Position numbers and translations under genes: made by a program. A DNA stretch of 36,111 bases from Macrostomum lignano (Eukaryota): the NCBI GenBank assembly GCA_002269645.1, contig NIVC01004753.1:1-36111 (forward strand). The letters run 5' to 3'. The number at the start of each line of letters is the position of its first letter. Position 1 is the first letter of the stretch. The notes below the pieces were generated by a model that saw only the letters and a program-made list of their open reading frames with translations, was not told the origin of the DNA and ran no database searches. Shown here piece after piece: positions 1 through 34,600 of this stretch.

Positions 1-2745
1 ATTCCCCATCTCCCTCTGTCTCTCCCTTCTCCTTCTGTCTATTCCCCATCTCACCCTGTCTATTCCTCATCTCATCCTGTCTATTCCACATCTCACCCTG
101 TCTATTCCACATCTCCTTCTGTCTATTCCCCATCTCCCTCTGTCTCTCCCTTCTCCTTCTGTCTATTCCCCATCTCGCCCTGTCTATTCCACATCTCACC
201 CTGTCTATTCCACATCTCACCCTGTCTATTCCCCATCTCATCCCGTCTATTCCCCATCTCATCCCGTCTATTCCCCATCTCATCCCGTCTATTCCCATCT
301 CACCCTGTCTATTCCCCATCTCGCCCTGTCTATTCACATCTCACCCTGTCTATTCCCCATCTCACCCTGTCTATTCCCATCTCACCCTGTCTATTCCACA
401 TCTCACCCTGTCTATTCCCTATCTCCTTCTGTCTATTCCCCATCTCCTCTGTCTCTCCCTTCTCCTTCTGTCTATTCCACATCTCACCCTATCTATTCCA
501 CATCTCACCCTGTCTATTCCCCATCTCACCCTGTCTATTCCACATCTCACCCTCTCTATTCCACTTCTCACCCTGTCTATTCCTCATCTCACCCTGTCTA
601 TTCCACATCTCAGCCTGTCTACTCTCCATCTCATCCCGTCTATTCCCCATCTCATCCCGTCTATTCCCCATCTCATCCCGTCTATTCCCCATCTCATCCC
701 GTCTATTCCCCATCTCATCCCGTCTATTCCCATCTCATCCCGTCTATTCCCCATCTCACCCTGTCTATTCCACATCTCACCCTGTCTATTCCACATCTCA
801 CCCTGTCTATTCCCCATCTCACCCTGTCTATTCCACATCTCACCCTGTCTATTCCACATCTCCTTCTGTCTATTCCCCATCTCCTCTGTCTCTCCCTTCT
901 CCTTCTGTCTATTCCACATCTCACCCTGTCTATTCCACATCTCACCCTGTCTATTCCCAATCTCACCCTGTCTATTCCACATCTCACCCTGTCTATTCCA
1001 CATCTCACCCTGTCTATTCCACATCTCACCCTGTCTATTCCACATCTCACCCTGTCTACTCTCCATCTCATCCCGTCTATTCCCCATCTCATCCCGTCTA
1101 TTCCCCATCTCATCCCGTCTATTCCCCATCTCATCCCGTCTATTCCCCATCTCATCCCGTCTATTCCCCATCTCATCCCGTCTATTCCCCATCTCACCCT
1201 GTCTATTCCACATCTCACCCTGTCTATTCCACATCTCACCCTGTCTATTCCCCATCTCATCCCGTCTGTTCCCCATCTCACCCTGTTTATTCCCCATCTC
1301 CCTCTTTCTCTCCCTTCTCCTTCTGTCTATTCCCCATCTCGCCCTGTCTATTCCACATCTCACCCTGTCTATTCCACATCTCACCCTGTCTATTCCCCAT
1401 CTCCTTCTGTCTATTCCCCATCTCCCTCTGTCTCTCCCTTCTCCTTCTGTCTATTCCCCATCTCCCTCTGTCTCTCCCTTCTCCTTCTGTCTATTCCCCA
1501 TCTCCTTCTGTCTATTCCCTATCTCCCTCTGTCTCTCCCTTCTCCTTCTGTCTATTCCCATCTCACCCTATCTATTCCCCATCTCCTTCTGTCTATTCCC
1601 CATCTCACCCTGTCTATTCCACATCTCACCCTGTCTATTCCACATCTCACCCTGTCTATTCCACATCTCACCCTGTCTATTCCCCATCTCACCCTATCTA
1701 TTCCCCATCTCCTTCTGTCTATTCCCCATCTCCCTCTGTCTCTCCCTTCTCCTTCTGTCTATTCCCCATCTCCTTCTGTCTATTCCCCATCTCCCTCTGT
1801 CTTTCCCTTCTCCTTCTTTATTCCTCATCTCACCCTGTCTATTCCCCATCTCACCCTATCTATTCCCCATCTCCTTCTGTCTATTCCCCATCTCACCCTA
1901 TCTATTCCTCATCTCACCCTGTCTATCCCCCATCTCGCCCTGTCTATTCCTCGTCTCCTTCTGTCTATTCCCCATCTCACCCTATCTATTCCCCATCTCC
2001 CTCTGTCTATTCCTCGTCTCCTTCTGTCTATTCCCCATCTCACCCTATCTATTCCCCATCTCCCTCTGTCTCTCTCATCTCCTTCTGTCTATTCCCCATC
2101 TCCCTCTGTCTCTCCCTTCCCCTGTCTATTCCCCATCTCACCCTATCTATTCCCCATCTCCTTCTGTCTATTCCCCATCTCACCCTATCTATTCCCCATC
2201 TCCTTCTGTCTATTCCCCATCTCACCCTATCTATTCCCCATCTCCTTCTGTCTATTCCCCATCTCACCCTATCTATTCCTCATCTCACCCTGTCTATCCC
2301 CATCTCGCCCTGTCTATTCCTCGTCTCCTTCTGTCTATTCCCCATCTCACCCTATCTATTCCCCATCTCCCTCTGTCTCTCCCATCTCCTTCTGTCTATT
2401 CCCCATCTCCCTCTGTCTCTCCCTTCCCCTGTCTATTCCCCATCTCACCCTATCTATTCCCCATCTCCTTCCGTCTATTCCCCATCTCACTCTATCTATT
2501 CCCCATCTCCTTCCGTCTATTCCCCATCTCACTCTATCTATTCCTCATCTCACCCTGTCTATTCCCTTTCTCACCCTATCTATTCCTCATCTCACCCTGT
2601 CTATCCCCAATCTCGCCCTGACTATTCCCCATCTCACTATGTCTATCCGCTATCTCACCCAGTCTTTTCCCGTTCTTACCCTGTCTATTCCTCATCTCGC
2701 CCTGTCTAATCCCCATTTCCCCTGTCTATCCGCTATCTCACCCTG
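1..2745. repeat. Pyrimidine-rich minisatellite, ~20-21 bp unit (CTCACCCTGTCTATTCCCCAT and variants), truncated by the window start
   Basis: Continuous tandem copies with interspersed variants (CTCATCCCGT..., CTCCTTCTGT..., CTCCCTCTGTCTCTCCCTT). It degenerates after ~2600. Confidence 0.97.
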
Positions 2746-3224
2746 GCTAGACACCTCTAGATCGCCAAGCTTAACCTATCTATCCATAGACGTGCTGCAA
2801 ACTGGAACATATTAAAGCGATCAAGTACGTCTTGGTAACACGAATTTAAAGTTCCTTAAAAGTACACACTGACCCATAGCCGTCCCTGGGCTGTCCCAGC
2901 AGCTAAGGCAGGTTGAACAGCGAGTATCAAAACTAATAGGAAACCGGTCTCTTGGCGGACTTACTTCAAGCTGGGAAAGGAAGGAAGGAGAAGAGAGCGG
3001 AGTGGACGGAAAGAGATTCTGCTCCACCTTGGCAGCGTCAGTCACAGCCTCGAGCATAATTTAAAACTGTTGTATGAAGAGAGCCGGAGCTAAAGAGTGG
3101 CCACTTCAATCGGCTTGGCTCAAGCTAAAATGCTTGGCTATATTTTTTCCTTGAGGTTTATCAATGAATCAAATTTATTTCAATCTAATTCTGAGAAGTT
3201 AGGCTTAAATTTACTAGATTTTAA

Positions 3225-4968: not shown

Positions 4969-7900
4969 GTGTCTGTCTGTGTGTCTGTCTGTCTGTCTGT
5001 CTGTGACTTTCTATCCCTCCCAATGCCTGTCTGTCAGTGCCTGTCTTTACCACTGTCTCTCTCAGAGTCTGTCTGTCATGCGGTGCAGTTCGGTAGTCCG
5101 GAACCATTTTCCACACCTCATTGCACCGATGTCTCTGTCGGAGTCTGAGTAGGAATATCAGCCCTGGCCGGCGCTACATTGAGCTCAATTTCGAATCTAA
5201 TGAGTCTCATCTGCGGCCCGCTGCACTTAGCAATTCCGAACTCTGTCTAGAAAAGCTACAACTCTGTCTGCTGGGTATAGAGATATAGATGCATGTACTT
5301 TTTAACTGCTCGGATTTCTTCCAAGTGGAGAGAAAGGAAAGAAGATGCTCATAGCTAGGCACTGTAGTGCAGAATCCGTTGTTAAAGATGTGTATCGTAA
5401 ATAATTTTCAAACAATTATGGAACGTAATTATTGTAGAAAATGAATTTCTTATTTAATCTATACAATATGTTAGCTCCTAGCTTATCTGACTAAATTTTT
5501 TTTAATTTAGTACGTTGGTACTAGTATTGTGAGCATACACAGAATTGAGCCTAGGACTCTTGGAACAAGAGTGCGATGTACTCAACCGCTCTGTGGCATC
5601 GAGACGGCGTGATGAAGCTGCACCGCTATCGCTAGTTATTTGATCGTCTATAGTCTAAGAGCTTAAGTGAAGGTCCGTCCAAGTCGAGAGACATCAAAGG
5701 AGCCGCAACCTTTCTCTCATCTGAAAATTTGATTACATATAAGAGCCTGATTTTCTATTAAACCATCCTAACAGACATTGTGACTCACTGTGATTGACGG
5801 ATTGCCCAAAAAGCTACCGGGGGGGGGATGTGTCAAAGCGCTCAATGAATGGGCTGCTTATGTACCTCTCAAATATTTTAAGCTTTAATAATAAAATCCT
5901 GTGATTAATGGTTTAGCGAGAATAATGATTTATGAGTCTGAGTTATTAAGTTGATTGCCTTTTTTTCAATTTCTCAGGACTATACTATCACAATGTACTT
6001 GAACCAGTACTGGACAGACAACAGGCTAGCATTTGACATTCGTAATGCAAATAAATCAATGACTTTAACCGGAGAATTTGCCAGCAAGATCTGGGTGCCA
6101 GATACTTTCATTGCGAACGACAAGCATTCATTTTTGCACGACGTCACCGAGCAGAACAAGATGGTGCGGCTGTATGGCGACGGGAGAATCATCTACGGAA
6201 TGCGGTCAGCACGGTTTTGGGACTGGGGTGTGGGATTGGGCATAGCGGAGCAGTGATTGAGGTGGATGCAGTGGGGCAAGGAGTGAGGTGGGTGCACTGG
6301 GGCAGGGAGTGAGGTGGGTGTAGCGGGGCAGGGAGTGAGGTGGGTGTAGCGGGGCAGGGAGTGAGGTGGGTGTAGCGGGGCAGGGAGTGAGGTGGGTGTA
6401 GCGGGGCAGGGAGTGAGGTGGGTGTAGCGGGGCAGGGAGTGAGGTGGGCGCAGCTGAAAAGGAAGTGAGCTATAGATGGTATAGTATAGCAATAAAAAAT
6501 CAAGCAGACTAGCACCTAATCATTTCCAGTTTATACGTACCCAATTGCAGGTTCACCACCACCTTGGCTTGCATGATGGACTTGCACTATTACCCACTGG
6601 ATGTACAGAACTGCACCGTTGAGATTGAAAGCTGTAAGCTGCGACAGACGTGCTTGTTTAATCTATAAGGATGTCTGTTCAATCGTTACCTCACTTCAGC
6701 ACCCGACATCCACCTCACTCCACCACCTATCTCACCCTAGATGGCTACCCAACGGAAGACGTGACAATGCAATGGAAAAACGGTCAATCGGCAGTCGACG
6801 GTGCTGATCGCGTGAAAATGCCTCAGTTCACGCTGGAACATTTTGAAGTTAGCACAACCACCATATCATTGTCGACAGGTGCGTCGAATTTTAATCCACA
6901 ATGCACTGGTTGAACTGGCTCGTATAGGACAGGGATCTAGAACAGGAATCTAGAACAGGGATCTAGACCAGGGATCTACACCCACCTAGAACAGGGATCT
7001 AGAAAAAGGAATGGGCAAACTTTTTACCTCAAAGGCCAGGTAGAGAACCTAGCGCGTGACTTCGGACCAGAGAAGGGGAGAGGAGAGGTCAAGGCGCATT
7101 GAGTTCTAATTTGAGCTCTAAAATCTTAGGCTTACCGGTTTCAAGCCTCTGGGTCAAGCGTAAAAATTAACGTTTAATGCAATGCAAGTTTGCCTTTTAA
7201 GTAGGATTTTTGTCGGTCTGATGAAATACATATGAGTACATCTAATAATCTGTGCTATTTGCTCAACCTTGTCACAAAGTTTACAATCGAGTGGTTGGGA
7301 GTGAGAGAGTGCTCTGATCCTGACGTAACAGTTCTCCTGTTAATGTTTGACCTGTGCTGGTTCATTCACTCTCTCATCTATCTCTCTCTCTCAGGAGAGG
7401 GAATAGAGAAGAGAGAAGAGAGATGAGAAAAAAATGAAGGAGACGAGAAGAGAGATAATGAAATAGAATAGGAGAGAGGAGAGAAGAAGAGAAGAGAAGG
7501 GACAGGAGAGGAGGGGAGAAAAGAGAGGAGAGAGGATAAAAAAGAGGAAACCTGTGAAGAGACACAAACCATGAGCGGGCCGGATTGGTATTGTGAAGTT
7601 TCAAAGGACCCGAGGGCCGGATAGAGAGGCTTCGCGGGCCGGATTTTGCCGACCCCTGATGTAGGAGACTAAGTATATGATAATTTGAAACCGAAGTTCA
7701 ATTCTTGAGGGAGCGATGGAAACCAAGTTACAAGTTAACTTAATTAGCATTTGATCAGAGGACAGACGGACAGACAAGACCGACCCGCTTTGGCCGTGTT
7801 TCACGAAGCTCAATCCGGATCAGGGCCCAAAAAAATAAATGAGCTTTTTTAGATACTATAAAATGTAGGCTGTTGGACTCAAAAAAGGGAGAAGGGGAGA

Positions 7901-10900: not shown

Positions 10901-13900
10901 TGGAAATCCCTAAGTCTCGCTTTCTACCCTTATTCCTCTCTTTCCCTTCTGACGCTTCATCAAGTTCACGGGGGCCTGGCATGAGGATCTAAGATTCCTT
11001 TGGGCTTCGAGCTTCTGGTCGCTAATTGCTTGTTGCTGGCCTCCGATGCGCGGAGGGTTTCCAAGTCCATTCTGGCAGGCCGGCCGAAATCCCCCTCCAC
11101 CTCTTCCTGTGTCCATCCCGGCTTGCAATTCCCTCTGTTGAGTGACGCGTGAGCGACCTCCCCCCCACCCCCCAGGATTTTGGCACTTTCAGTCAGTCTA
11201 CTGGAAGAGAGAATTGTTGAATCGGGCGGCCCAACGCGAACACGTAGACCTGACAGAATCACACGCTTCCTTTCCAAGGGGAGCTTCTTTTTTCTCTCCG
11301 ATGTTTCGCCTCAGCTCCCGTTTCCATCTCTGTTTAGTGCATTAAAGTGTCCCGCGGTGTTGATGCGTCTGGCAAGCAAGGGCGATAAACAGTGCTTCAG
11401 AAATGAAGATAGAGAAGAAATAATGGGGCCTACAGATGAAGAAACAGGTTGCAGAAATATAATAGCTGTACTTTACTCATTTGTCAGAGCCGTGATAACG
11501 TTTCTTGTCTGTCAGATAACTATAAAAGAAAGTCTTAGAAAATCTTTGGCTACTGTTATCAGCAAAAAAACAACTTTCCAAGAGTAAATATTTGAACTTT
11601 TTTTCGAATGGCATCCGCAGAGAGTCGAGTTAATGAAAAAGTCGAAGTAAGGCATCGCTTTTTAACTTTGTACGTAGAGCTAATTTAAATTGGATTGAAA
11701 TGCACTTAGTGTACTCAATATCCGCCTTAAATTTTTATTGGTTCGAGGGTAGGAGAATTCAGGGGTGAGGGGCTACGACTCCGCATTCTCGACCTTAATT
11801 CTGATTGGCTGAAGCCACTCACGGAGGGGTTGAAAATTTGGGGGTGAGGGCTGCGACTCCGCATTTCCGACCTTAATTCTGATTGGCTGAAGCCACTCAC
11901 GGAGGGGTAGAAAATTTGGGGGTGAGGGGCTGCGACTCCGCATTCCTTATTTTATTGGCTGAAGCCTGAAGGCTCTACATATAATTTTTTAGGTCCGTTA
12001 TTACACTGGTTTTCCGAAATTTCACTTAATTTATTTTCAATTTTCCACAGGCTCCTATCAGCGACTGTCGCTCATCTTTAGACTCCGCAGAAATGTTGGC
12101 TTCTTTGTATTCCAAACGTACCTGCCGTCCATTCTAATCGTTATGCTGTCCTGGGTGTCATTCTGGATTAATCACGAGGCAACTTCGGCTCGCGTAGCAC
12201 TCGGTATGTACGCGTGTATCGCTACTCATGGCAGTAGTAGTATAGCAGTATAGCACTATTGGAGACGGTAGTTCTGGGCGTTTTCTGCTTGGATTTCTTG
12301 TAGAATGCATCGAATAGGAAGCATACGTAAATTGTATCCGTCGAAAACTGCATTCGAATCGAGCACATAGCCCTTGAAATTAGGCAGAAATAAGTAAGAG
12401 AAATAAAAATCGCGGATAAAATCTTTATTATATCAGGAAATGTTTTATTTAGCTGCTCTCATATCAAGGTAAACTACTCGTAGTTCGGGTTCCCAGCCGT
12501 TACATTTTATAATTTACCGATAAACTGCTTCTCCGTTACTATATTACTACAGGCATCACCACCGTTCTCACCATGACTACAATCAGCACAGGCGTTCGTT
12601 CCTCCCTGCCTCGTATCAGCTACGTAAAAGCCATAGACATTTACCTGGTGATGTGTTTTGTGTTTGTGTTCGCCGCTCTGCTGGAGTACGCCATGGTGAA
12701 TTACACTTATTGGGGCGCCAGGGCCAAGCGGAAGGCCAAACGGTTGAGAGACGCCAGCAGCGGAAATAACACACGAGGCAACTGCTCTGGAGACTTCATT
12801 GACAACTCGGTGAGGCCTCCTGCTAGGGATAAAAAATTCTCTGTTTAACCGGCTTAGTTTTAGTAGTATTTTACGAGCTAGAAGTATTTGAGAGCTTAAC
12901 TAGTTGGATTATAATTGGCTTGCGTACATTTCTGGGTAGAGTAGAATTTTCGAAACCAAAGCTTTGGGCTCTGATTGGCTGACAGGGAGTAGAAAAGAAG
13001 GTCTGAGTCAACGAGATGGGTTCTGATTGGCTGACATGGGGTATAGAGAACTTTTTTTAGCCAATAAAGTCGGACTCGGATTGGCTGACCCTAAAGCAGC
13101 ATTTTAGATCCTAGAAACGGTGTTTCTTATTGGTATAGCCAGATCGGCGTTCATATGGCTTTATCTGTCTGGTTTCAGAACACAGAGCTTTTTTAGTGCG
13201 TAGCCAAAACACCATGAGTGTCAAAATTAGGGCTCTAAAACCTTTTAAAGAAGGATTTAACTTAACGTAACCTCATCCGCATGCCTTAGTACTTTTCCTG
13301 TCAGCTAAGTTGTTCTCTGATTGTCTCCATCAAACTCCTCTCTGCAGCACTCGGGCGTTGATCTGAACAATCAGCGCATGTCGCCGATAATTGGCCTACG
13401 AATTCGACGCTTGAATCAGCAGCTGCACCAGCAGCAGCAGCAGCAGCAAAGCGAAGACGAAAGCCGAGAAGAGGAGACCAGCATTCAGTCGTGCCCTCAG
13501 CAGCAGCAGCAGCAGCCGGAGCCGCCGCCTCCATCATCCGTGCCCGTCTACCCGATGAGTCCCCATGTGCCCTACATCAGCCGGCCGGGCTGCTACCTGG
13601 GCGCCAGTGGATCTGGTCTCGGCGGCAGCAGCGGCGGCAGCGGAGGCGTCGGCGGCGGCATTGCAGGCGTTGGTCGCAGCTACCTTCGCCAGCGTCGCGT
13701 AACCGCTGGCAGCCTTGGTGGGGGCGGCTTCGACAGGCGGCATCAGCACCAGCGAGCGGCTGCCGCGGTCATCGGGCAGCAGCTACGACAGCGGGCGTTG
13801 CAGATCCGGGCGCGAATGCCGCGCATCAAGGATGTGAACAAGATTGACAAGTACTCCAGGCTGGCCTTCCCGTCGCTGTTCGTCCTGTTCAACCTGTGCT

Positions 13901-13929
13901 ACTGGTGCTTCTACCTGCTCACCGGCTGA
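4042..13929 (+). CDS. Lcch3: GABA-A receptor beta-like subunit (LCCH3 type), 5'-partial: join(4042-4109,5978-6204,6551-6633,6741-6878,12051-12203,12553-12809,13348-13929)
   Basis: All six introns are GT-AG and phases are compatible (1508 nt = 2 + 502 codons including TGA). Motifs: [10 protein letters not shown]|DYT, WVPDTF, Cys-loop [16 protein letters not shown]1 [19 protein letters not shown]2 [18 protein letters not shown]3 [22 protein letters not shown]4 [22 protein letters not shown]2-M3 matches the Drosophila LCCH3 sequence as I recall it. Confidence 0.93.
4665..5003. repeat. (TGTC)n tetranucleotide microsatellite, ~340 bp
   Basis: Near-perfect TCTG run with occasional TGTG variants. 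Confidence 0.98.
5978..6204 (+). CDS. Lcch3: GABA receptor beta-like exon (227 bp)
   Basis: ttctcAG acceptor and GTCAGC donor; encodes [14 protein letters not shown]...[39 protein letters not shown]. Confidence 0.93.
6272..6450. repeat. G-rich 26-bp minisatellite (GCGGGGCAGGGAGTGAGGTGGGTGTA)
   Basis: About 6 tandem copies filling most of intron 6205-6550. Confidence 0.93.
6551..6633 (+). CDS. Lcch3: GABA receptor beta-like exon (83 bp, Cys-loop)
   Basis: ttgcAG acceptor and GTAAGC donor; encodes [27 protein letters not shown]. Confidence 0.95.
6741..6878 (+). CDS. Lcch3: GABA receptor beta-like exon (138 bp)
   Basis: ccctAG acceptor and GTGCGT donor; encodes (Y)[11 protein letters not shown]...[20 protein letters not shown]. 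Confidence 0.92.
7006..7658. mobile_element. Degenerate non-autonomous hAT (Charlie-like) element
   Basis: Left end AAGGAATGGGCAAACTTTTT...AAAGGCCAG; right end GCGGGCCGGATTTTGCCGACCCCTG. Flanks ATCTAGAA / ATGTAGGA resemble a decayed 8-bp NTCTAGAN target. Confidence 0.6.
8872..9360. repeat. 12-bp minisatellite (GATAGAATCAGG / GATAGAATCGGG / GATAGACTCAAG)
   Basis: About 40 tandem copies; source of the IESG/LSLI pseudo-ORFs. Confidence 0.96.
10290..10455. repeat. Degenerate ~16-bp tandem array (GATAATCTCACCCC-like), possibly a TE subterminal repeat
   Basis: About 9-10 imperfect copies. Confidence 0.6.
10517..10720 (+). mobile_element. Possible tRNA-derived SINE head with Pol III A and B boxes; 3' boundary uncertain
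   Basis: A-box-like CAGCTCAGCGC at 10524-10534 and B box GGTTCGACTCC at 10558-10568. No complete cloverleaf. Confidence 0.45.
11762..11967. repeat. ~78-bp tandem repeat x2.6, each copy with an inverted CCAAT box (ATTGGCTG)
   Basis: GGGGTGAGGGGCTRCGACTCCGCATT...TGATTGGCTGAAGCC repeated at ~11762, ~11840 and ~11918. Confidence 0.88.
12051..12203 (+). CDS. Lcch3: GABA receptor beta-like exon (153 bp, M1 and start of M2)
   Basis: ttttccacAG acceptor and GTATGT donor; encodes [50 protein letters not shown]. Confidence 0.95.
12553..12809 (+). CDS. Lcch3: GABA receptor beta-like exon (257 bp, M2-M3)
   Basis: tacAG acceptor and GTGAGG donor; encodes [34 protein letters not shown]...NS. Confidence 0.94.
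13348..13929 (+). CDS. Lcch3: GABA receptor beta-like terminal exon (polyQ/Gly-rich loop and M4)
   Basis: ctctctgcAG acceptor in phase 0; ends [35 protein letters not shown]. Confidence 0.88.
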   Translation, partial: HSGVDLNNQRMSPIIGLRIRRLNQQLHQQQQQQQSEDESREEETSIQSCPQQQQQQPEPPPPSSVPVYPMSPHVPYISRPGCYLGASGSGLGGSSGGSGGVGGGIAGVGRSYLRQRRVTAGSLGGGGFDRRHQHQRAAAAVIGQQLRQRALQIRARMPRIKDVNKIDKYSRLAFPSLFVLFNLCYWCFYLLTG

Positions 13930-15503: not shown

Positions 15504-16900
15504 TCATGGCATGGATGTCAAGCCAAGATACAAGGCCAAGTGCAACTGCCAACTTCCGCGACGAACTGACCAAGCCGATAGTATAGTTAAGACTGCTGCT
15601 GTCGGAGAGCTTTGAGTTGCCTCTACCTGCTTCTCAATGTGACTCTCTCGATGGAAGCAACGCGACACTCCGGTCTCTAATTGAACGCGTATCAGTGCTT
15701 TACCAGAGAGCTGAAGTGTTTTTAACGCCAACTTTGATTCATATGAACTGCGATTTACTCGTGCATTTCACTGAAGAATTGCTTCTTCAGTTTCAGCCGC
15801 TGTGAGGTTCAGGCACAGAGGGAGATGTCTAAACTCCCAGGGTGTAGGTTCAGGTGTCGGGCTGCAGTTGTACCTCTGCTGTCTGTCCCTGGCTATCTCC
15901 GAATAGTAGCAGTGAGCCTCGCTGTAGCTGAACGCATCTGCGGCGCCGTTGTACGGGTTCAAGAACAGAACTAAGTCATTGTGTTTCTCTACGAACTGGT
16001 CGGGAAAGTCCGCCGGTGTCATCTGGGCATCTTGCATTGCGATGGAGACGTCGTAGGCTCGACCGGGACCCAGGCTGATCACATTAGAGGTGAATCGAGA
16101 CGGGTAGTGACCTCTGGGCGTCAGGTAGAGATACATTCCGCTGCCTTTATCGAACCCAATCGGATTTTCCAGGTTCCAGTCGAATGGATATAATGTTATC
16201 TGCTGACCAGATGCGACAACAGACATTGTTGGAAGTCGGTCTGTATGGTTTGAAAACAGGCCAAGCTTATCGAAGTCAAAAAAGTAAGGATCGAGAAGCA
16301 GGTCGAGCTGCAATCTGTTGTTCGTATTCTGCATGCGTGATAACTCAGCATCGGTGAGGGCAAGCTTGAAGCACTTCAGATGGTTCGGGTGGAACAGCGT
16401 CTCTACCGCGATCGGGGAATTCAGACTGCGATCTGAGCCTGCACTGAAGATTCCGTAGTTTCCGTAGAATGTCTGCAGTTTTCTCTGACCCACAATGTCC
16501 GCCAGAGTTCTGTAGGGCAGAGACTGGATCAAGCTTGTTGGCCGAAGTTCGCGCAGTGTTGTGTTTTCACTCTCCGACGCATTCAGAGATCCGAGAGCGG
16601 CATCGAATGCAGTCTGAGCAGCATAGAACGGCATGTTCACCTGGTCCGCCTCTGACCTGTTCAGTCGGTAGATAAACGAGCCAGCGGCTTGGAGACTGTT
16701 GCAAAAGTAGACATCGGGAAACTCGAATGGAACCTTTTCCGCTTGGAACTCTGACCTTACGCTCGGACTGTTCAGGCGTCGAATGTAGACGGTACAGGTG
16801 TTTAACAGAAGGCCCAGGAAGCTCAAGAATGCCAGAAGCCAGAAGATCCTCTTGCAGGGTCAATATGTTGTATTTTCTTCACAATGAAGAACTCGCGTGC
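15504..16900 (-). pseudogene. Intronless DEG/ENaC (amiloride-sensitive sodium channel family) gene, disabled
   Basis: TM1 KRIFWLLAFLSFLGLLLNTCTVY followed by FEFPDVYFCN, HPNHLKCF, GMYLYLTPRGHYP and YSEAHC...YNC...LPLC. In-frame TGA at 16862-60 lies just before TM1 and TGA at 15770-68 follows the Cys-rich region. The TM2 region is split across frames (YRLGQFVAEVGS / LALYLGLT). Confidence 0.75.
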
Positions 16901-24250: not shown

Positions 24251-24661
24251 ATGGCCTCCGGTGTAACTGTCGATGCCAGTCTCAAGGACGACTTCAATGC
24301 CATTAAGCTGGGCCACAAGTACGCCTACATGGTGTTCAAAATCGAAGGCGAATCGCAAATCAAAACCGAACGAGTGGCTGAGAACTCCACATACGAAGAG
24401 TTCATTGGTACTCTGCCGCCGAATGAGTGTCGCTACGTTGTGTACGACTACAAATACACCTTGGACGATGGCGCCAAGCGGGAGAAGCTGCTGTTTATCC
24501 ACTGGGCTCCAGATAGCGCCAAGATTCGCGACAAGATGCTGTACGCCTCGTCCAAGGACGCTATTAAAAAGGAGCTGAAAGGCGTAGTGGAAATTCAGGC
24601 CAACGATATGTCCGAAGTTGATGAGGCCGCTATTAAAGAGAAGGTCAAGGCTTCCGGTTGA
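24251..24661 (+). CDS. cofilin: Actin-depolymerizing factor / cofilin, 136 aa, uninterrupted CDS
   Basis: MASGV N-terminus with Ser3, YMVFKI, CRYVVYDY, KLLFIHWAPDSAKIRDKMLYASSKDAIKKEL and EIQAND are ADF-H family hallmarks. Confidence 0.96.
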   Translation: MASGVTVDASLKDDFNAIKLGHKYAYMVFKIEGESQIKTERVAENSTYEEFIGTLPPNECRYVVYDYKYTLDDGAKREKLLFIHWAPDSAKIRDKMLYASSKDAIKKELKGVVEIQANDMSEVDEAAIKEKVKASG

Positions 24662-27990: not shown

Positions 27991-28607
27991 ATTCCATCTC
28001 TCCGACACTTCATATCTCTGGCAAGCTTGTCGAAACATCTAGCTAAACTGATTTGTCGGAGATATGAATCCCCCCCCTGATTTTAGTGCGCCCATCAAAG
28101 GCTACAATAGTCAATAATTGCTTAATTAGCTCAGCCCGTATAGGCGGGGGTGGCTGGGTGGCTGCGCTAACCAAATCCGAGGGTAAATGTACAATGCAAT
28201 GTACATTTATCAAGTTTTGTTTGCCTTCCAGATCAGCCAACCAATTGTATACGACAATTATAGTTTCGTTGGTGGGTTGGAGGCTGAATCGCTAGAAATA
28301 TGTACATACATAAGCGACGAGAACTTATATGTGCAGAAATTTGTCGTAATTGATAGCAGTATAAATGACATCGTCAATGCTATTCATTTGGTATTTTGGT
28401 TAGCGTTGAATTTAAGTTAAAAAAAGTGTCAGACTCATTAGCTATTAATTTAGTCATTCACTCTACCATATCTGTTCTGCAAGGGTTATACGTGTAAGCC
28501 TTCGGAATCTTTCAGTTTTATGTTTTTTTTTCTAATGTCTCGGCTAGCTCCTATTTTATTTAAAATAAAATAACGGTTACACATATTTTCAAACGATCAC
28601 TGGATCG

Positions 28608-29190
28608 CCAATAAACCAACCCATTGTATCACCAATAAACCAACCATTGTATCATCAATAAACCAACCCACTGTATCGCCCTTAAACCAACCCATTGGAT
28701 CGCCCTTGAACCAACCCTTTGGATTGCCCAAAAACAAACCCGTTGGATTGCCAATAAACCAACCCATTGGATCGCCCATAAACCAACCCATTGGATCGCC
28801 CTTGAACCAACCCTTTGGATTGCCCAAAAACAAACCCTTTGGATTGCCCAAAAACAAACCCGTTAGATTGCCAATAAACCAACCCATTGGATCGCCCTTG
28901 AACCAACCCTTTGGATTGCCCAAAAACAAACCCTTTGGATTGCCCAAAAACAAACCCGTTGGATTGCCAATAAACCAACCCATTGGATCGCCCATAAACC
29001 AACCCATTGGATCGCCCTTGAACCAACCCTTTGGATTGCCCAAAAACAAACCCTTTGGATTGCCCAAAAACAAACCCGTTAGATTGCCAATAAACCAACC
29101 CATTGTATCGCCCATAAACCAACCCATTGTATCGCCCATAAACCAACCCATTGTATCGCCCTTAAACCAACCCATTGGATCGCCAATAAA
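28608..29190. repeat. 24-bp minisatellite with higher-order variants (ATAAACCAACCCATTGGATCGCCC)
   Basis: About 24 copies; variant order repeats in blocks. Confidence 0.95.
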
Positions 29191-29360
29191 CTAGTCCATG
29201 AAATCGTCAACCATTTGAGTATCCCTAAAGCAACGGCCATCATGTGTCATCTTATATCCTCATTTTAAAACTAATTACATAAGGCTTTGTTGCGCAATTC
29301 ACCTAGCTGCCTAAATTAATATTTATTAATAATTTCTGGTTCCAGCTCCATCAATCAACA

Positions 29361-29993
29361 ATGAACACCCAGCTGGCTCCAGGTGCGGTCAGGAACACCC
29401 CCGTTCACCGCCAGCTTCCCCGGGCCAAGATCTTCCAACAGAATGAGCAGCAGCCAGCCACTCCGGCTACGCCTCGCACCGGCCTGGCGTTGCTTAGCAA
29501 CCGAAACGATAATAACAGTACAAACGTCTCCAAGCCGTCGGGCCCGGCTGCAGCTGCAAAGCCGTCAGCCAATCAGGCCGCGGCTGCAGCTGTTCACCCA
29601 CCGCCTCCAGTTGAGAAGCCGCCGCCAGATCCAGCCGAATTTGAGGCTCCCTACGAGTGGGAATTTCTGCCCGACACGGCTGACTGGCTCCGCCTGTTGG
29701 GTCGCATCGGCTCCGCCGGCTGTCCCGGCGGCCTGCCGTTCCGCGGCCGTCTGGCAACTATCGACCAGTCGCCGCAGCCGCTGGTCTCCGACAACAAGGA
29801 GAATGTACCGCCGCCGTCGCCCTCGTCTTCAGAGTCGCCTGGCGGGCATCACTGGGACGAGTCGCCAACTAGAAGCGGCTGTCGTCGTCGGAAGGGCTAT
29901 CGGCAGTCCAGCCTGGGCAGCAGCGACAGTCTGGACAATGATGTTGACGAGGATCGAGTGGCGATCTGTTTCGACATTGATAGAATCCTGTGA
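29361..29993 (+). CDS. 210-aa disordered protein, candidate securin (PTTG1-like separase inhibitor)
   Basis: GC-rich ATG-to-TGA ORF in AT-rich flanks, with an in-phase acceptor (tttctggttccAG, 29344-45) just upstream. Contains D-box RTGLALLSN, VEKPPPDPAEFE, LPD, KEN, PPSP and a C-terminal CFDID. Coding status is well supported; the securin identity is motif-based inference. Confidence 0.6.
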   Translation: MNTQLAPGAVRNTPVHRQLPRAKIFQQNEQQPATPATPRTGLALLSNRNDNNSTNVSKPSGPAAAAKPSANQAAAAAVHPPPPVEKPPPDPAEFEAPYEWEFLPDTADWLRLLGRIGSAGCPGGLPFRGRLATIDQSPQPLVSDNKENVPPPSPSSSESPGGHHWDESPTRSGCRRRKGYRQSSLGSSDSLDNDVDEDRVAICFDIDRIL

Positions 29994-30595
29994 CAGTTGG
30001 TTGCGGCACTGTGCAACTTGATTTATGACCAGTATAACAAGTGCGTTTATTTATATTTTAATCACCCTGCTCAATTAATTTAGCTCAATTATGTAATTAG
30101 AAACCCCTCTTTATTATACAATTTTCTGTTGCATTTTATATAGCTCATATTCTGTCTATCCATTGATCAATTGCTAGTTTCCGTCTTCATCATTTCTAAT
30201 TGACTTTTTTTGCTTTCGCTCATTCTATCAGCTTTTTTCATATATACTCCTCTTCGCGTATATATCTGCAGTGAAGAAATATGTGCAACAAAATTATTCA
30301 AAAGCATTTGTACTTTATGCTACAACTATTATTTGCTATTATTTATTATTCACTTTGCTACCCCATATCATAAATCGCACTTTATTTTTTGTCTATTATT
30401 TGTTTCATAAAATATGCCAATAACTGGACACCAGCAAAAATATTACATATTAATAACATAATAAACATTCATACGTCGATTATTAATAAATTTTTTCTCG
30501 TATGGTGGGCTGCAATTTTTTTGCTGTTTTTTGTCTTGTGGGGTTCCAAGTTCCAAGAATCCATTCTAGACATTCCTGTAAATGGCCAGATTTGT

Positions 30596-31136
30596 AGCTG
30601 TCAGATGGGAGTTCCAGCAGTGTCACATGGGAGTTCCAGCAGTGTCAGATGAGAGTTCCAGCTGTGTCAGATGGGAGTTCCAGCAGTGTCAGATGGGAGT
30701 TCCAGCTGTGTCAGATGGGAGTTCCAGCAGTGTCAGATGTGAGTTCCAGCAGTGTCAGATGGGAGTTCCAGCTGTGTCAGATGGGAGTTCCAGCAGTGTC
30801 AGATGGGAGTTCCAGCTGTGTCAGATGGGAGTTCCAGCAGTGTCAGATGGGAGTTCCAGCAGTGTCAGATGGATGGGAGTTCCAGCAGTGTCAGATGGGA
30901 GTTCCAGCAGTGTCAGATGGGAGTTCCAGCTGTGTCAGATGAGAGTTCCAGCTGTGTCAGATGGGAGTTCCAGCTGTGTCAGATGGGAGTTCCAGCTGTG
31001 TCAGATGGGAGTTCCAGCTGTGTCAGATGGGAGTTCCAGCAGTGTCAGATGGGAGTTCCAGCTGTGTCAGATGGGAGTTCCAGCTGTGTCAGATGGGAGT
31101 TCCAGCTGTGTCAGATGGGAGTTCCAGCAGTGTCAG
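30596..31136. repeat. 21-bp minisatellite (TGTCAGATGGGAGTTCCAGC(A/T)G-like)
   Basis: About 25 tandem copies ending ~95 nt upstream of the PABPN1 ATG. Confidence 0.96.
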
Positions 31137-31229
31137 GGGGAGTTACAGCTTCAAGCTAGTTTAATCGGAGGACTATCTTTAGTGTAGTATAAAACAACGA
31201 AGCGATACCCAAACCCGACCATTCATGCC

Positions 31230-31641: not shown

Positions 31642-34600
31642 GTGCGGCATGGGGTTCGAGTCCCTCTGGTGTGGGAACATTGTCTGATAAATCGAGCACG
31701 TGTGTACATTGAGCATGTGTGTACATCATCAGTGTGGCACATTGAGCATGTGTGTACATTTATCAGTGTGGCACATTGAGCATGTGTGTACATTTATCAG
31801 TGTGGCACATTGAGCATGTGTGTACATTATCAGTGTGGCACATTGAGCATGTGTGTACATTTACGAGGGTCACTCAGAAAGTCTTTAGCCTGAGTAGGAT
31901 CCACGAGACGTAGAAGCATGAAATTTGTCTATGGTAAAGACCAACTTTTAAAAGTATCGCAGCAAAAATTTCAAACAGAAGCAGCCACTTTTGAGTCCAC
32001 TGCAGCGAGTTAAAGTCAGTTCACCCCCTGAGATCTTCAATTCAACAATGAAGCTGGAAAATCGCGACTTCAGAGCAATGATGTACCTGCACTTCAAGCA
32101 AGGCAAGTCGCCGGCCGAATCGTATCAAACTTTACAGAACGTTTTCACCCATGTATGTCCTTCATACGCAACCGTCAAAAACTGGTTCGCTGAGTTTCGC
32201 CGAGGTCGAGAAAGCCTCGAAGATGAACATCGATCCGGGAGACCCTGTGACGCAGTGACTCCAGAAAATATCTGCGCTGTGTCCAGCATGATTGCCGCTG
32301 ACCGGCGAGTGACCTACCAGCAGATCCAGCAGGAGATCGGTATTGGATCGGGGAGTGTGCACGCCATTATGCACGAACACCTTGGAGTGCGGAAGCTGGC
32401 TTCCCGGTGGATCCCCCATCAGCTGTCGGACGTGCAGAAGGACACCAGGGTGGCTTGGTGCCGATTCATGCTGCAGAAATTCGAATCCGGGACCAGCCGG
32501 CGTATCTGGGACATCCTCACGGGCGATGAGACCTGGATTTATCAATACGACCCCGAAAGCAAGCGCCAGTCAGCCATGTGGACCTTTGGAGACGAGGACA
32601 GCCCCACCAAGTTTCGACGCAGCCGGAGTGTCGGCAAGCAGATGGTGGCCTGTTTCTTCATGCGCACTGGGCATGTGGCTTCCGTTTCACTTGAAGATCG
32701 CCAGACAGTCACCGCTGACTGGTACACAACGGTTTGCCTGCCCAAGGTCTTTTCTGCTGTGAGCCAGAGGCGCCCAAGGTGCGGAATGCGTGGGGTGCTT
32801 CTGCACCACGACAACGCCAGCGCGCACACGGCGGCTCAAACTCTGGAGTTTCTGGCTGACTGTGGGGTCCAGCTGATGACTCACCCTGCTTACAGTCCAG
32901 ACCTGGCACCGTGCGACTTTTTTCTGTTTCCGAAGTGCAAGGAGATTCTGAAGGGCCAGGTCTTTTCTTCACCGGAAGAAGCTGTGAATGAGTTTAAAAA
33001 CATCATCGAGGAGCTCCGGGATGAGGATTGGCGGCAGTGCTTCGACAGCTGGTTTCACAGGATGCAAGCCTGTATCAATGCCGGTGGAGAGTATTTTGAG
33101 CACTTGTAGTCGTTTTTTAGTTCATTTGTTGCTGTTTTCGTGTTCAAGCTAAGAACTTTCTGAGTGACCCTCGTATCAGTGTGGCACATTGAGCATGTGT
33201 GTACATTATCAGTGTGGCACATTGAGCATGTGTGTACATTTATCAGTGTGGCACATTGAGCATGTGTGTACATCATCAGTGTGGCACATTGAGCATGTGT
33301 GTACATTTATCAGTGTGGCACATTGAGCATGTGTGTACATTATCAGTGTGGCACATTGAGCATGTGTGTACATCATCAGTGTGGCACATTAAGCACGTGT
33401 GTACATCATCAGTGTGGCACATTAAGTACGTGTGTACATCATCAGTGTAGCACATTAAGCACGTGTGTACATCATCAGTTTGGCACATTAAGCACGTGTG
33501 TACATCATCAGTTTGGCACATTAAGCACGTGTGTACATCATCAGTGTGGCACATTAAGTACGTGTGTACATCATCAGTGTAGCACATTAAGCACGTGTGT
33601 ACATCATCAGTTTGGCACATTAAGCACGTGTGTACATCATCAGTTTGGCACATTAAGCACGTGTGTACATCATCAGTGTGGCACATTAAGCACGTGTGTA
33701 CATCATCAGTGTGGCACATTAAGCACGTGTGTACATCATCAGTGTGGCACATTAAGTACGTGTGTACATTATCATTGTGGCACATTATGCAGCCCCCAAG
33801 GCACATAGTGTACATGCCTGACGATCAGAAAGTCAGGGCCGGTGTACACCCTGTGTGAGCGTGTGCATGAATGCGTGCCTGCGTACTGAGGGTGGAATTG
33901 CTGTCAGCTCTTGTTGTGAGACGATTTCCTGCTGCAAATATTACACTACTAACCAGTAGCACCACATGACTATAATCCCAATTGTCGCAGGCCAGCCCAA
34001 AGGTTTCGCCTACGTGGAATTCGCCGAGAAAGACTCTGTAGAGGCGGCCCTCGCCCTAGACGAGAGCCTGTTCCGCAATCGTTCCCTCAAAGTGATGGCT
34101 AAGCGAACCAACACGCCCGGCATGTCTGTTACTAACCGGCCGCCGAGGGGCCGATTCCGCGGTCGCATGGCCCGAATGTACGGCGGGTCCGGTATGGCGC
34201 CCCGGGGAGGTCGCGGATTCAGGTATATAAATATGCTGAGAGCTCTGCGGTTATGTTGATGGCTTCGGCTTTGTTTGCGATTCTTTGCATTACCTGTTTG
34301 TGACTAAAGTACAGTGAGTACTATTAGTGTGCACCATTATTGTGATCATAGGGTCTATCCGATACTCTATTGCGGTATGAGATTAGGGATCTCAGTGCTC
34401 AGATTGGGGATCTCAGGTGCTCAGATTGGGGATCTCAGTGCTCAGATTGGGGATCTCAGTGCTCAGATTGGGGATCTCAGGTGATCAGATTGGGGATCTC
34501 AGTGCTCAGATTGGGGATCTCAGGTGATCAGATTGAGGATCTCAGGTGATCAGATTGGGGATCAGTGATCAGATTGGGGATCTCATGTGATCTGACTGAG

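Follow-up and report, generated by a model that had tools for sequence, protein, structure and literature searches.

A candidate securin in the flatworm Macrostomum lignano

Securin, the inhibitor of separase, is essential for anaphase timing, and its fast evolution leaves the catalogues of whole phyla without a securin. Recognition of the plant securin came as late as 2019, and the only features conserved among securins are the D and KEN boxes, both described as N-terminal, together with a patch that contains an invariant Glu (PMC6690013). Separase cleaves substrates at sites of the form [D/E/S]-Phi-E-x-x-R, and securin swaps the P1 Arg of this site for a hydrophobic residue; in the human protein the pseudosubstrate reads E115-K-F-F118 with P119 at P1', and changing 118FP to RE makes it cleavable (PMC6858450, PMC10317155, PMC12609080). 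Past the pseudosubstrate come NxLxPhiE, then LPE(E), then a hydrophobic stretch, which in human securin follows LPE at residues 136-146; in yeast, securin carries VPE and Scc1 LPD (PMC6858450, PMC10317155, PMC12609080). One eukaryote-wide survey of SMC complexes used KEN, D-box, LPE and a separase-interacting segment (SIS) as securin criteria and excluded proteins with other domains; it reported D-box and LPE as less conserved, and Pfam family PF04856 now covers both the human and the yeast proteins (bioRxiv 10.1101/2024.01.07.573240 supplement). For Schistosoma mansoni, the one flatworm surveyed to date, the same work scores separase as present (Separase=1) and both securin and sororin as absent (Securin=0, Sororin=0), while oyster has Securin=1 (bioRxiv 10.1101/2024.01.07.573240 supplement). 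Our literature searches returned no described flatworm securin.

Here we analyse an open reading frame (ORF) of the flatworm Macrostomum lignano that lies in a window of 36,111 bp, the entire contig NIVC01004753.1 of assembly GCA_002269645.1. A preliminary description of this DNA had read the ORF as a securin orthologue, an interpretation that our analysis partly supported: to judge by its sequence, the protein is best explained as the M. lignano securin, a reading to which we assign a probability of about 45%.

Gene model and genomic setting

The candidate is a single-exon ORF on the forward strand (29361..29993, +) that encodes 210 aa plus stop and runs uninterrupted from an ATG at 29361 to a TGA at 29991-29993, exactly as first described. 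The impression that it was unannotated was mistaken, as the exact same protein is already present in NCBI, UniRef and nr, with a deposited model that consists of a complete CDS in one exon. GC content at codon positions 1, 2 and 3 is 0.65, 0.56 and 0.67, respectively, the high third-position value (GC3) matching that of neighbouring genes. An Arg-rich ORF of 212 codons in the +1 frame (29383..30021, +) overlaps the candidate and looks like an off-frame by-product of GC-rich coding; since this second frame stays open for 212 codons across the same stretch, ORF length says little by itself.

Fifteen nucleotides 5' of the ATG is a TTCCAG (29340..29345, +) that fits the M. lignano trans-splice acceptor motif [T/C]TNCAG (PMC8629364) and that we infer to be used as a spliced-leader (SL) acceptor. 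It is separated from the ATG by five open in-frame codons (LHQST), and an in-frame stop lies at 29304-29306. If the spliced leader (ending ...TTGCATG) were joined at TTCCAG (29340..29363), its own ATG would be in frame and would add MLHQST, giving a 216-aa product. Trans-splicing affects 85% of neoblast-specific M. lignano genes (PMC8629364), and the upstream consensus acceptor is weakly suggestive in favour of the securin reading. From the sequence there may be a further coding exon upstream, against which the deposited single-exon CDS and the upstream tandem array both speak.

An identical copy of the candidate ORF, with the same gene call, lies on a second contig, and the two contigs share 99.6% identity across 10.6 kb. 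A third copy (NIVC01000459.1, 15645..16273, homologous to 29361..29993 of the window) contains a one-base frameshift and has no gene call. The frameshift falls just past codon 14, within or beside a five-C run at window positions 29398-29402, with full identity at the other 197 codons; because PacBio reads were used for the M. lignano assembly (PMC8629364), the change has the look of an assembly error, which it probably is, although a dead copy is possible instead. Being identical apart from this one frameshift, the three copies are uninformative on selection, and Macrostomum genomes besides M. lignano are deposited without annotation.

The locus reads, all on the forward strand, cofilin/ADF (24251..24661), the candidate ORF and a PABPN1-like RRM gene (from 31230), the cofilin gene being deposited under the name BOX15_Mlig... 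[Macrostomum lignano]. The candidate ORF sits between two tandem arrays, 24.7 copies of a 24-nt unit upstream (28601..29191, ~590 bp) and 24.9 copies of a 22-nt unit downstream (30599..31149). Once the downstream array is subtracted, ~690 bp separate the candidate from the PABPN1-like gene, a spacing below the 1-kb repeat-adjusted threshold that was used for operon calling in M. lignano (PMC8629364). Past a GT donor at 31643, the first intron of the PABPN1-like gene contains an intact-looking 372-aa Mos1/mariner-type transposase ORF (31991..33109, +; HTH_48, DDE), flanked by related 33-34-nt tandem arrays at 31706..31863 and 33175..33791. Other features of the contig include exons of a Cys-loop ligand-gated ion channel (Neur_chan_LBD and Neur_chan_memb; 5951..6256 and 13321..13929, +), a 352-aa ORF with a weak match to amiloride-sensitive sodium channels (ASC; 15768..16826, -), a 21-nt satellite (ATTCCCCATCTCACCCTGTCT) repeated 133 times at 1..2749 with strong strand asymmetry (GC skew about -0.8), and about a dozen more tandem arrays.

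Motifs of the candidate and similarity to securin

The protein was first characterised as disordered and Pro/Ser-rich, and both parts of that call hold. Its composition is P 13.8%, A 10.5% and S 9.5%, and a single-sequence AlphaFold2 model has a mean pLDDT of 50.5 and one helix only (11 residues, 106-116), which makes the disorder call right. With this pLDDT and zero Pfam domains, it shows the predicted disorder and the lack of any other signature domain (cyclin, shugoshin etc.) that are looked for in a securin. Vertebrate securin (PTTG1; PF04856; 7NJ1 chain B) is likewise a fully disordered protein of ~200 aa (210 residues in the candidate, 202 in human), but the candidate is Pro/Ala-rich and not Lys-rich.

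All motifs listed in the preliminary description were found at the residues given there, namely RTGLALLSN at 39-47, VEKPPPDPAEFE at 84-95, LPD at 103-105, KEN at 146-148, PPSP at 151-154 and the terminal DVDEDRVAICFDIDRIL. To gauge motif rarity we used 200,000 composition-preserving shuffles of the candidate. The D-box R39-T-G-L-A-L-L-S-N47 (29475..29501, +) occurs once, has the form RxxLxx[ILVM]xN that serves as the securin D-box criterion, and aligns with the human securin D-box R61-N68; the same pattern arose in 0.94% of shuffles. An extended KEN box, N145-KEN-VPP151 (29793..29822, +), overlaps the minimal Cdk site PPSP at 151-154. The pattern [DNE]KENxxP was present in 0.035% of shuffles (3.5e-4) and PPSP in 4.7%, and a plain D-box and KEN occurred jointly in 0.095%. 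A strict D-box plus an extended KEN would be expected in ~3 per million such sequences, a product of frequencies that assumes independence. This degron pair, each member of which is rare in shuffles, is the best objective signal in the candidate, and since degron motifs were defined beforehand and independently of the candidate sequence, we take it as likely that the protein is a substrate of the cell-cycle ubiquitin ligase APC/C. The securin-specific motifs were picked after the sequence had been viewed, so that their small single frequencies cannot simply be multiplied.

Both vertebrate securin and the candidate have a KEN box in addition to a D-box in the N-terminal third, but the position of the KEN box differs: residues 9-11 in human, and 146-148, after the patch described below, in the candidate. 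That patch, V84-D105 (VEKPPPDPAEFEAPYEWEFLPD; 29610..29675, +), is rich in Pro, acidic and aromatic residues and was delimited by motif comparison as a putative separase pseudosubstrate and docking region. It offers three possible P6-P1 registers, V84-E85-K-P-P88, E93-F-E95-A-P-Y98 and E99-W-E101-F-L-P104. The first of these had been described as ExxP at P1 (VEKPP); the motif is present and its P1 is not Arg, but its P6 would be Pro, and the other two registers fit an acidic P6 and a hydrophobic P5 better. The residue at P1 would thus be Pro or Tyr, where human securin has Phe118. At least one [DE]-Phi-E-x-x-hydrophobic/Pro site was found in 6.9% of shuffles, and a pseudosubstrate match is therefore weak evidence.

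The patch also follows vertebrate securin in a Phi-E-K-x-x-P element (VEKPPP in the candidate, IEKFFP in human), in xPxxFE (DPAEFE and NPLDFE) and in LP[DE] (LPD and LPE), and then leads into a hydrophobic stretch. Strict NxLxPhiE and LPE are absent from the candidate, the nearest sequences being DPAEFE, in which Ala replaces the Leu of NxLxPhiE, and LPD; in view of the yeast VPE and LPD and of the lower conservation of D-box and LPE reported by the survey, we regard this failure as soft. The hydrophobic stretch coincides with the sole helix of the AlphaFold2 single-sequence model, T106-I116 (TADWLRLLGRI; 29676..29708, +), which would correspond to the 136-146 stretch of human securin. Further towards the C-terminus the two proteins share PPSP, a Trp-acidic-Ser element (WDES in the candidate, WES in human) and a terminal C-x-D-I-D. 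The translation also contains a basic cluster, R174-R-R-K177 (29880..29891, +), followed by a 16-residue polar linker and by the acidic/hydrophobic tail D194-L210 (DVDEDRVAICFDIDRIL; 29940..29990, +), which is the best local match to the securin C-terminus (LDVELPPVCCDIDI). In an alignment of 27 mammalian securins, C197 and D199 reach at least 90% conservation.

The human reference sequence is identical to PDB 7NJ1 chain B at 202/202 residues, and the human motifs quoted in the preliminary description proved correct. An unsupervised global alignment paired candidate with human at the D-box, VEK with IEK, PxxFE with PLDFE, LPD with LPE, PPSP with PPSP, W165 with W174 and C.DID with C.DID, and scored above shuffles (z 3.3-3.4, p 0.004-0.006); taken together, global and local alignments gave z 2.3-3.4 and p 0.004-0.032 relative to composition-matched shuffles. 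The same motif order claimed earlier is reproduced here. Between the patch and LP the candidate has 3-5 residues more than human securin, and its KEN box is relocated. A mammalian securin HMM (hmmsearch --max) scored the candidate at 1.2 bits (empirical p 0.011-0.016), semi-global alignment to a position-specific scoring matrix of mammalian securins gave p 0.011-0.044, and, of the 97 securin positions with at least 90% conservation among mammals, the candidate is identical at 29 (p 0.0085, or 0.059 with block shuffles). These profile tests were built on mammalian securins, the best 120 of 467 matches to human securin all being from mammals. The register of the central region shifted when the reference was swapped for a 98%-identical one, so the central alignment is not robust. 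Overall, the shuffle p-values of 0.004-0.06 are suggestive and would fail once corrected for how many ORFs, windows and families a reader might match.

In none of the standard homology tests was membership of the candidate in Pfam Securin or the securin family significant. A profile comparison with the Securin family, which had been proposed as a check on the orthologue claim, did not bear it out: Pfam hmmscan of the whole candidate and six fragments matched zero families, Securin PF04856 included (maximum E 10, with an effective limit of about E 0.1-0.25 owing to the HMMER filters), and hhalign against 27 mammalian securins aligned only the last 24 residues (P=0.061, probability 0.9%). In BLASTP against human securin the two best segments, in shared order, had E 0.16 (C-terminal tails) and E 0.49 (D-box regions). 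A PDB-wide scan with the whole candidate yielded a chance peroxidase match and did not retrieve securin, and a scan with the C-terminal fragment retrieved nothing. Designer PPR repeat proteins, found in the PDB scan with the central fragment, were rejected as an artefact of weak matches summed over repeats, and securin was again not retrieved. Word-indexed HMMER searches of ~5.8 billion protein clusters, one for the entire protein and one for residues 78-210, found no homologue other than the candidate itself, a full phmmer search of 1.84 billion representatives added only one low-complexity 2387-aa protein, and no relatives were found among JGI metagenome contigs. The candidate thus differs from vertebrate securin in being without significant sequence homology to it. 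In favour of the orthologue claim stand the same-order pairing of motifs (p ~0.005 in global alignment), the null result for sororin given below, the fit to published motif criteria and the S. mansoni score of separase without securin; against it stand the negative Pfam, hhalign (P=0.06) and PDB results, the unstable central register, the homologue searches that returned no orthologue and the position of the KEN box.

The divergent securins S. cerevisiae Pds1, S. pombe Cut2, Drosophila Pimples, C. elegans IFY-1 and plant PATRONUS were each established by genetics or biochemistry, and the candidate, known from its sequence, fits their description. By the motif criteria of the literature, which its sequence matches at least approximately, the protein qualifies as a candidate securin.

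Alternative readings of the candidate

Next to the securin reading, the explanation that survives best is that of a real, lineage-restricted and disordered APC/C-regulated protein that does not inhibit separase, being either another substrate or a pseudosubstrate-type regulator, in which case nothing but short motifs and composition in common would make it look like securin. The degrons are the sole statistically strong features of the candidate, and cyclins, shugoshin and other proteins that also carry KEN and D-boxes are known to contaminate securin searches (bioRxiv 10.1101/2024.01.07.573240 supplement). The similarity to securin, at p 0.004-0.06 and with an unstable register, and the Pfam, hhalign and PDB scans that were negative for securin would also suit such a protein. 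It would leave unexplained why an unsupervised alignment pairs seven motifs in the order of human securin while the sororin control described below is null, and the Pfam scan detected no domain of another APC/C substrate family. Size and complete predicted disorder moreover suit securin, and on balance we consider this explanation somewhat unlikely.

We judge it unlikely, again, that the motifs arose by chance in a fast-evolving orphan whose protein, if made, has no cell-cycle role. The absence of homologues from the 5.8 billion clusters, the 1.84 billion representatives and the JGI metagenomes is what an orphan would show, a second frame is open for 212 codons on the same stretch, and one of the three genomic copies is frameshifted and without a gene call. 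Pro/Ser-rich disordered sequence readily yields short motifs, and the scan that brought up the candidate covered many ORFs. Chance would nevertheless have to produce the strict D-box with the extended KEN (~3 per million, independence assumed) in an ORF that is annotated as a protein in GenBank and UniRef and that has a high GC3 like its neighbouring genes, and the frameshift itself looks like an assembly error, given the five-C run, the PacBio reads and the 197 identical codons.

Sororin (CDCA5/Dalmatian) is a KEN-box APC/C substrate that shields cohesin from WAPL via a C-terminal motif, and a flatworm sororin was considered seriously on account of the AEFEA and KENxPP motifs and of the basic cluster, linker and acidic tail. 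Like CDCA5, the candidate is a small disordered protein with a KEN box. Its KENVPP resembles KENEPP of human sororin, the 5-mer AEFEA (candidate residues 92-96) recurs in the human sororin C-terminal region NAEFEAAEQFDLLVE, and RRRK, the 16-residue polar linker and the C-terminal FDI motif match the family layout of basic cluster, polar linker and acidic/hydrophobic C-terminal motif (PMC11148194). Sororin, too, was unfound in S. mansoni (bioRxiv 10.1101/2024.01.07.573240 supplement). As the lead reading it was rejected on the alignment statistics: in the same tests, global and local alignments to human sororin were no better than shuffles (p 0.18-0.39), a null result that doubles as a control on how specific the securin signal is. 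The human sororin sequence used agrees with PMC12976308 in length and at K227, W233, F241, A243, E245, F247 and E252. Neither the candidate nor its C-terminal fragments matched Pfam Sororin, the FGF motif of metazoan sororins is absent, W233 has no counterpart, and AEFEA lies mid-protein, broken by Pro97 and Pro104, where sororin requires a helix (K227-E245; PMC12976308). Taken together, these results make sororin a very improbable identity for the candidate. Nor is sororin known to rely on a D-box.

Geminin, CDK inhibitors and shugoshin were rejected because neither the candidate nor its fragments gave a Pfam match; geminin and shugoshin moreover require a coiled coil, and a single 11-residue helix is all that is predicted for the candidate.

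A putative flatworm securin and its implications

If the securin reading is correct, the candidate would be an intrinsically disordered M. lignano protein degraded in mitosis through the APC/C. Its N-terminal third would remain free and present the D-box R39-N47 to APC/C-Cdc20, and the patch 84-105 would occupy the active-site cleft of separase in antiparallel orientation and act as a pseudosubstrate that cannot be cleaved, with Glu at P4 and the P1 Arg replaced by Pro or Tyr. Helix 106-116 and the acidic/hydrophobic C-terminal tail would bind separase exosites and the N-terminal HEAT domain, and ubiquitylation via the D-box and KEN (146-148) would release separase and so permit cohesin cleavage. 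In this scheme APC/C targeting, separase binding, the active-site residues and homology to securin are inferred, on the basis of the ORF, its motifs, the predicted disorder, the rarity of the degron pair and a weak same-order similarity to vertebrate securin.

The arrangement of the degrons would be unusual for a securin, as NKENVPP (145-151) is C-terminal to the putative separase-binding patch, whereas in described securins the KEN box is N-terminal. That M. lignano has a working securin built of short motifs only, with this inverted degron layout and the KEN box inside the separase-bound half, seems unlikely. Were it true, separase-bound securin would offer just its D-box, the KEN box being accessible in the free pool only, a built-in means of destroying free and bound securin at different times, and the layout would represent either extreme divergence from the vertebrate design or convergence on it.

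The gain from identifying this securin would be incremental, in that a gap would be filled and no new principle established. Should the protein not be securin, it would still likely be a new APC/C substrate. Both transgenesis and RNAi are available in M. lignano, a model animal for research on stem cells and regeneration. A true securin reading would fill a phylum-level gap, and the candidate would offer a handle on neoblast and germline mitosis in this animal and a seed sequence for securin searches in planarians and parasitic flatworms.
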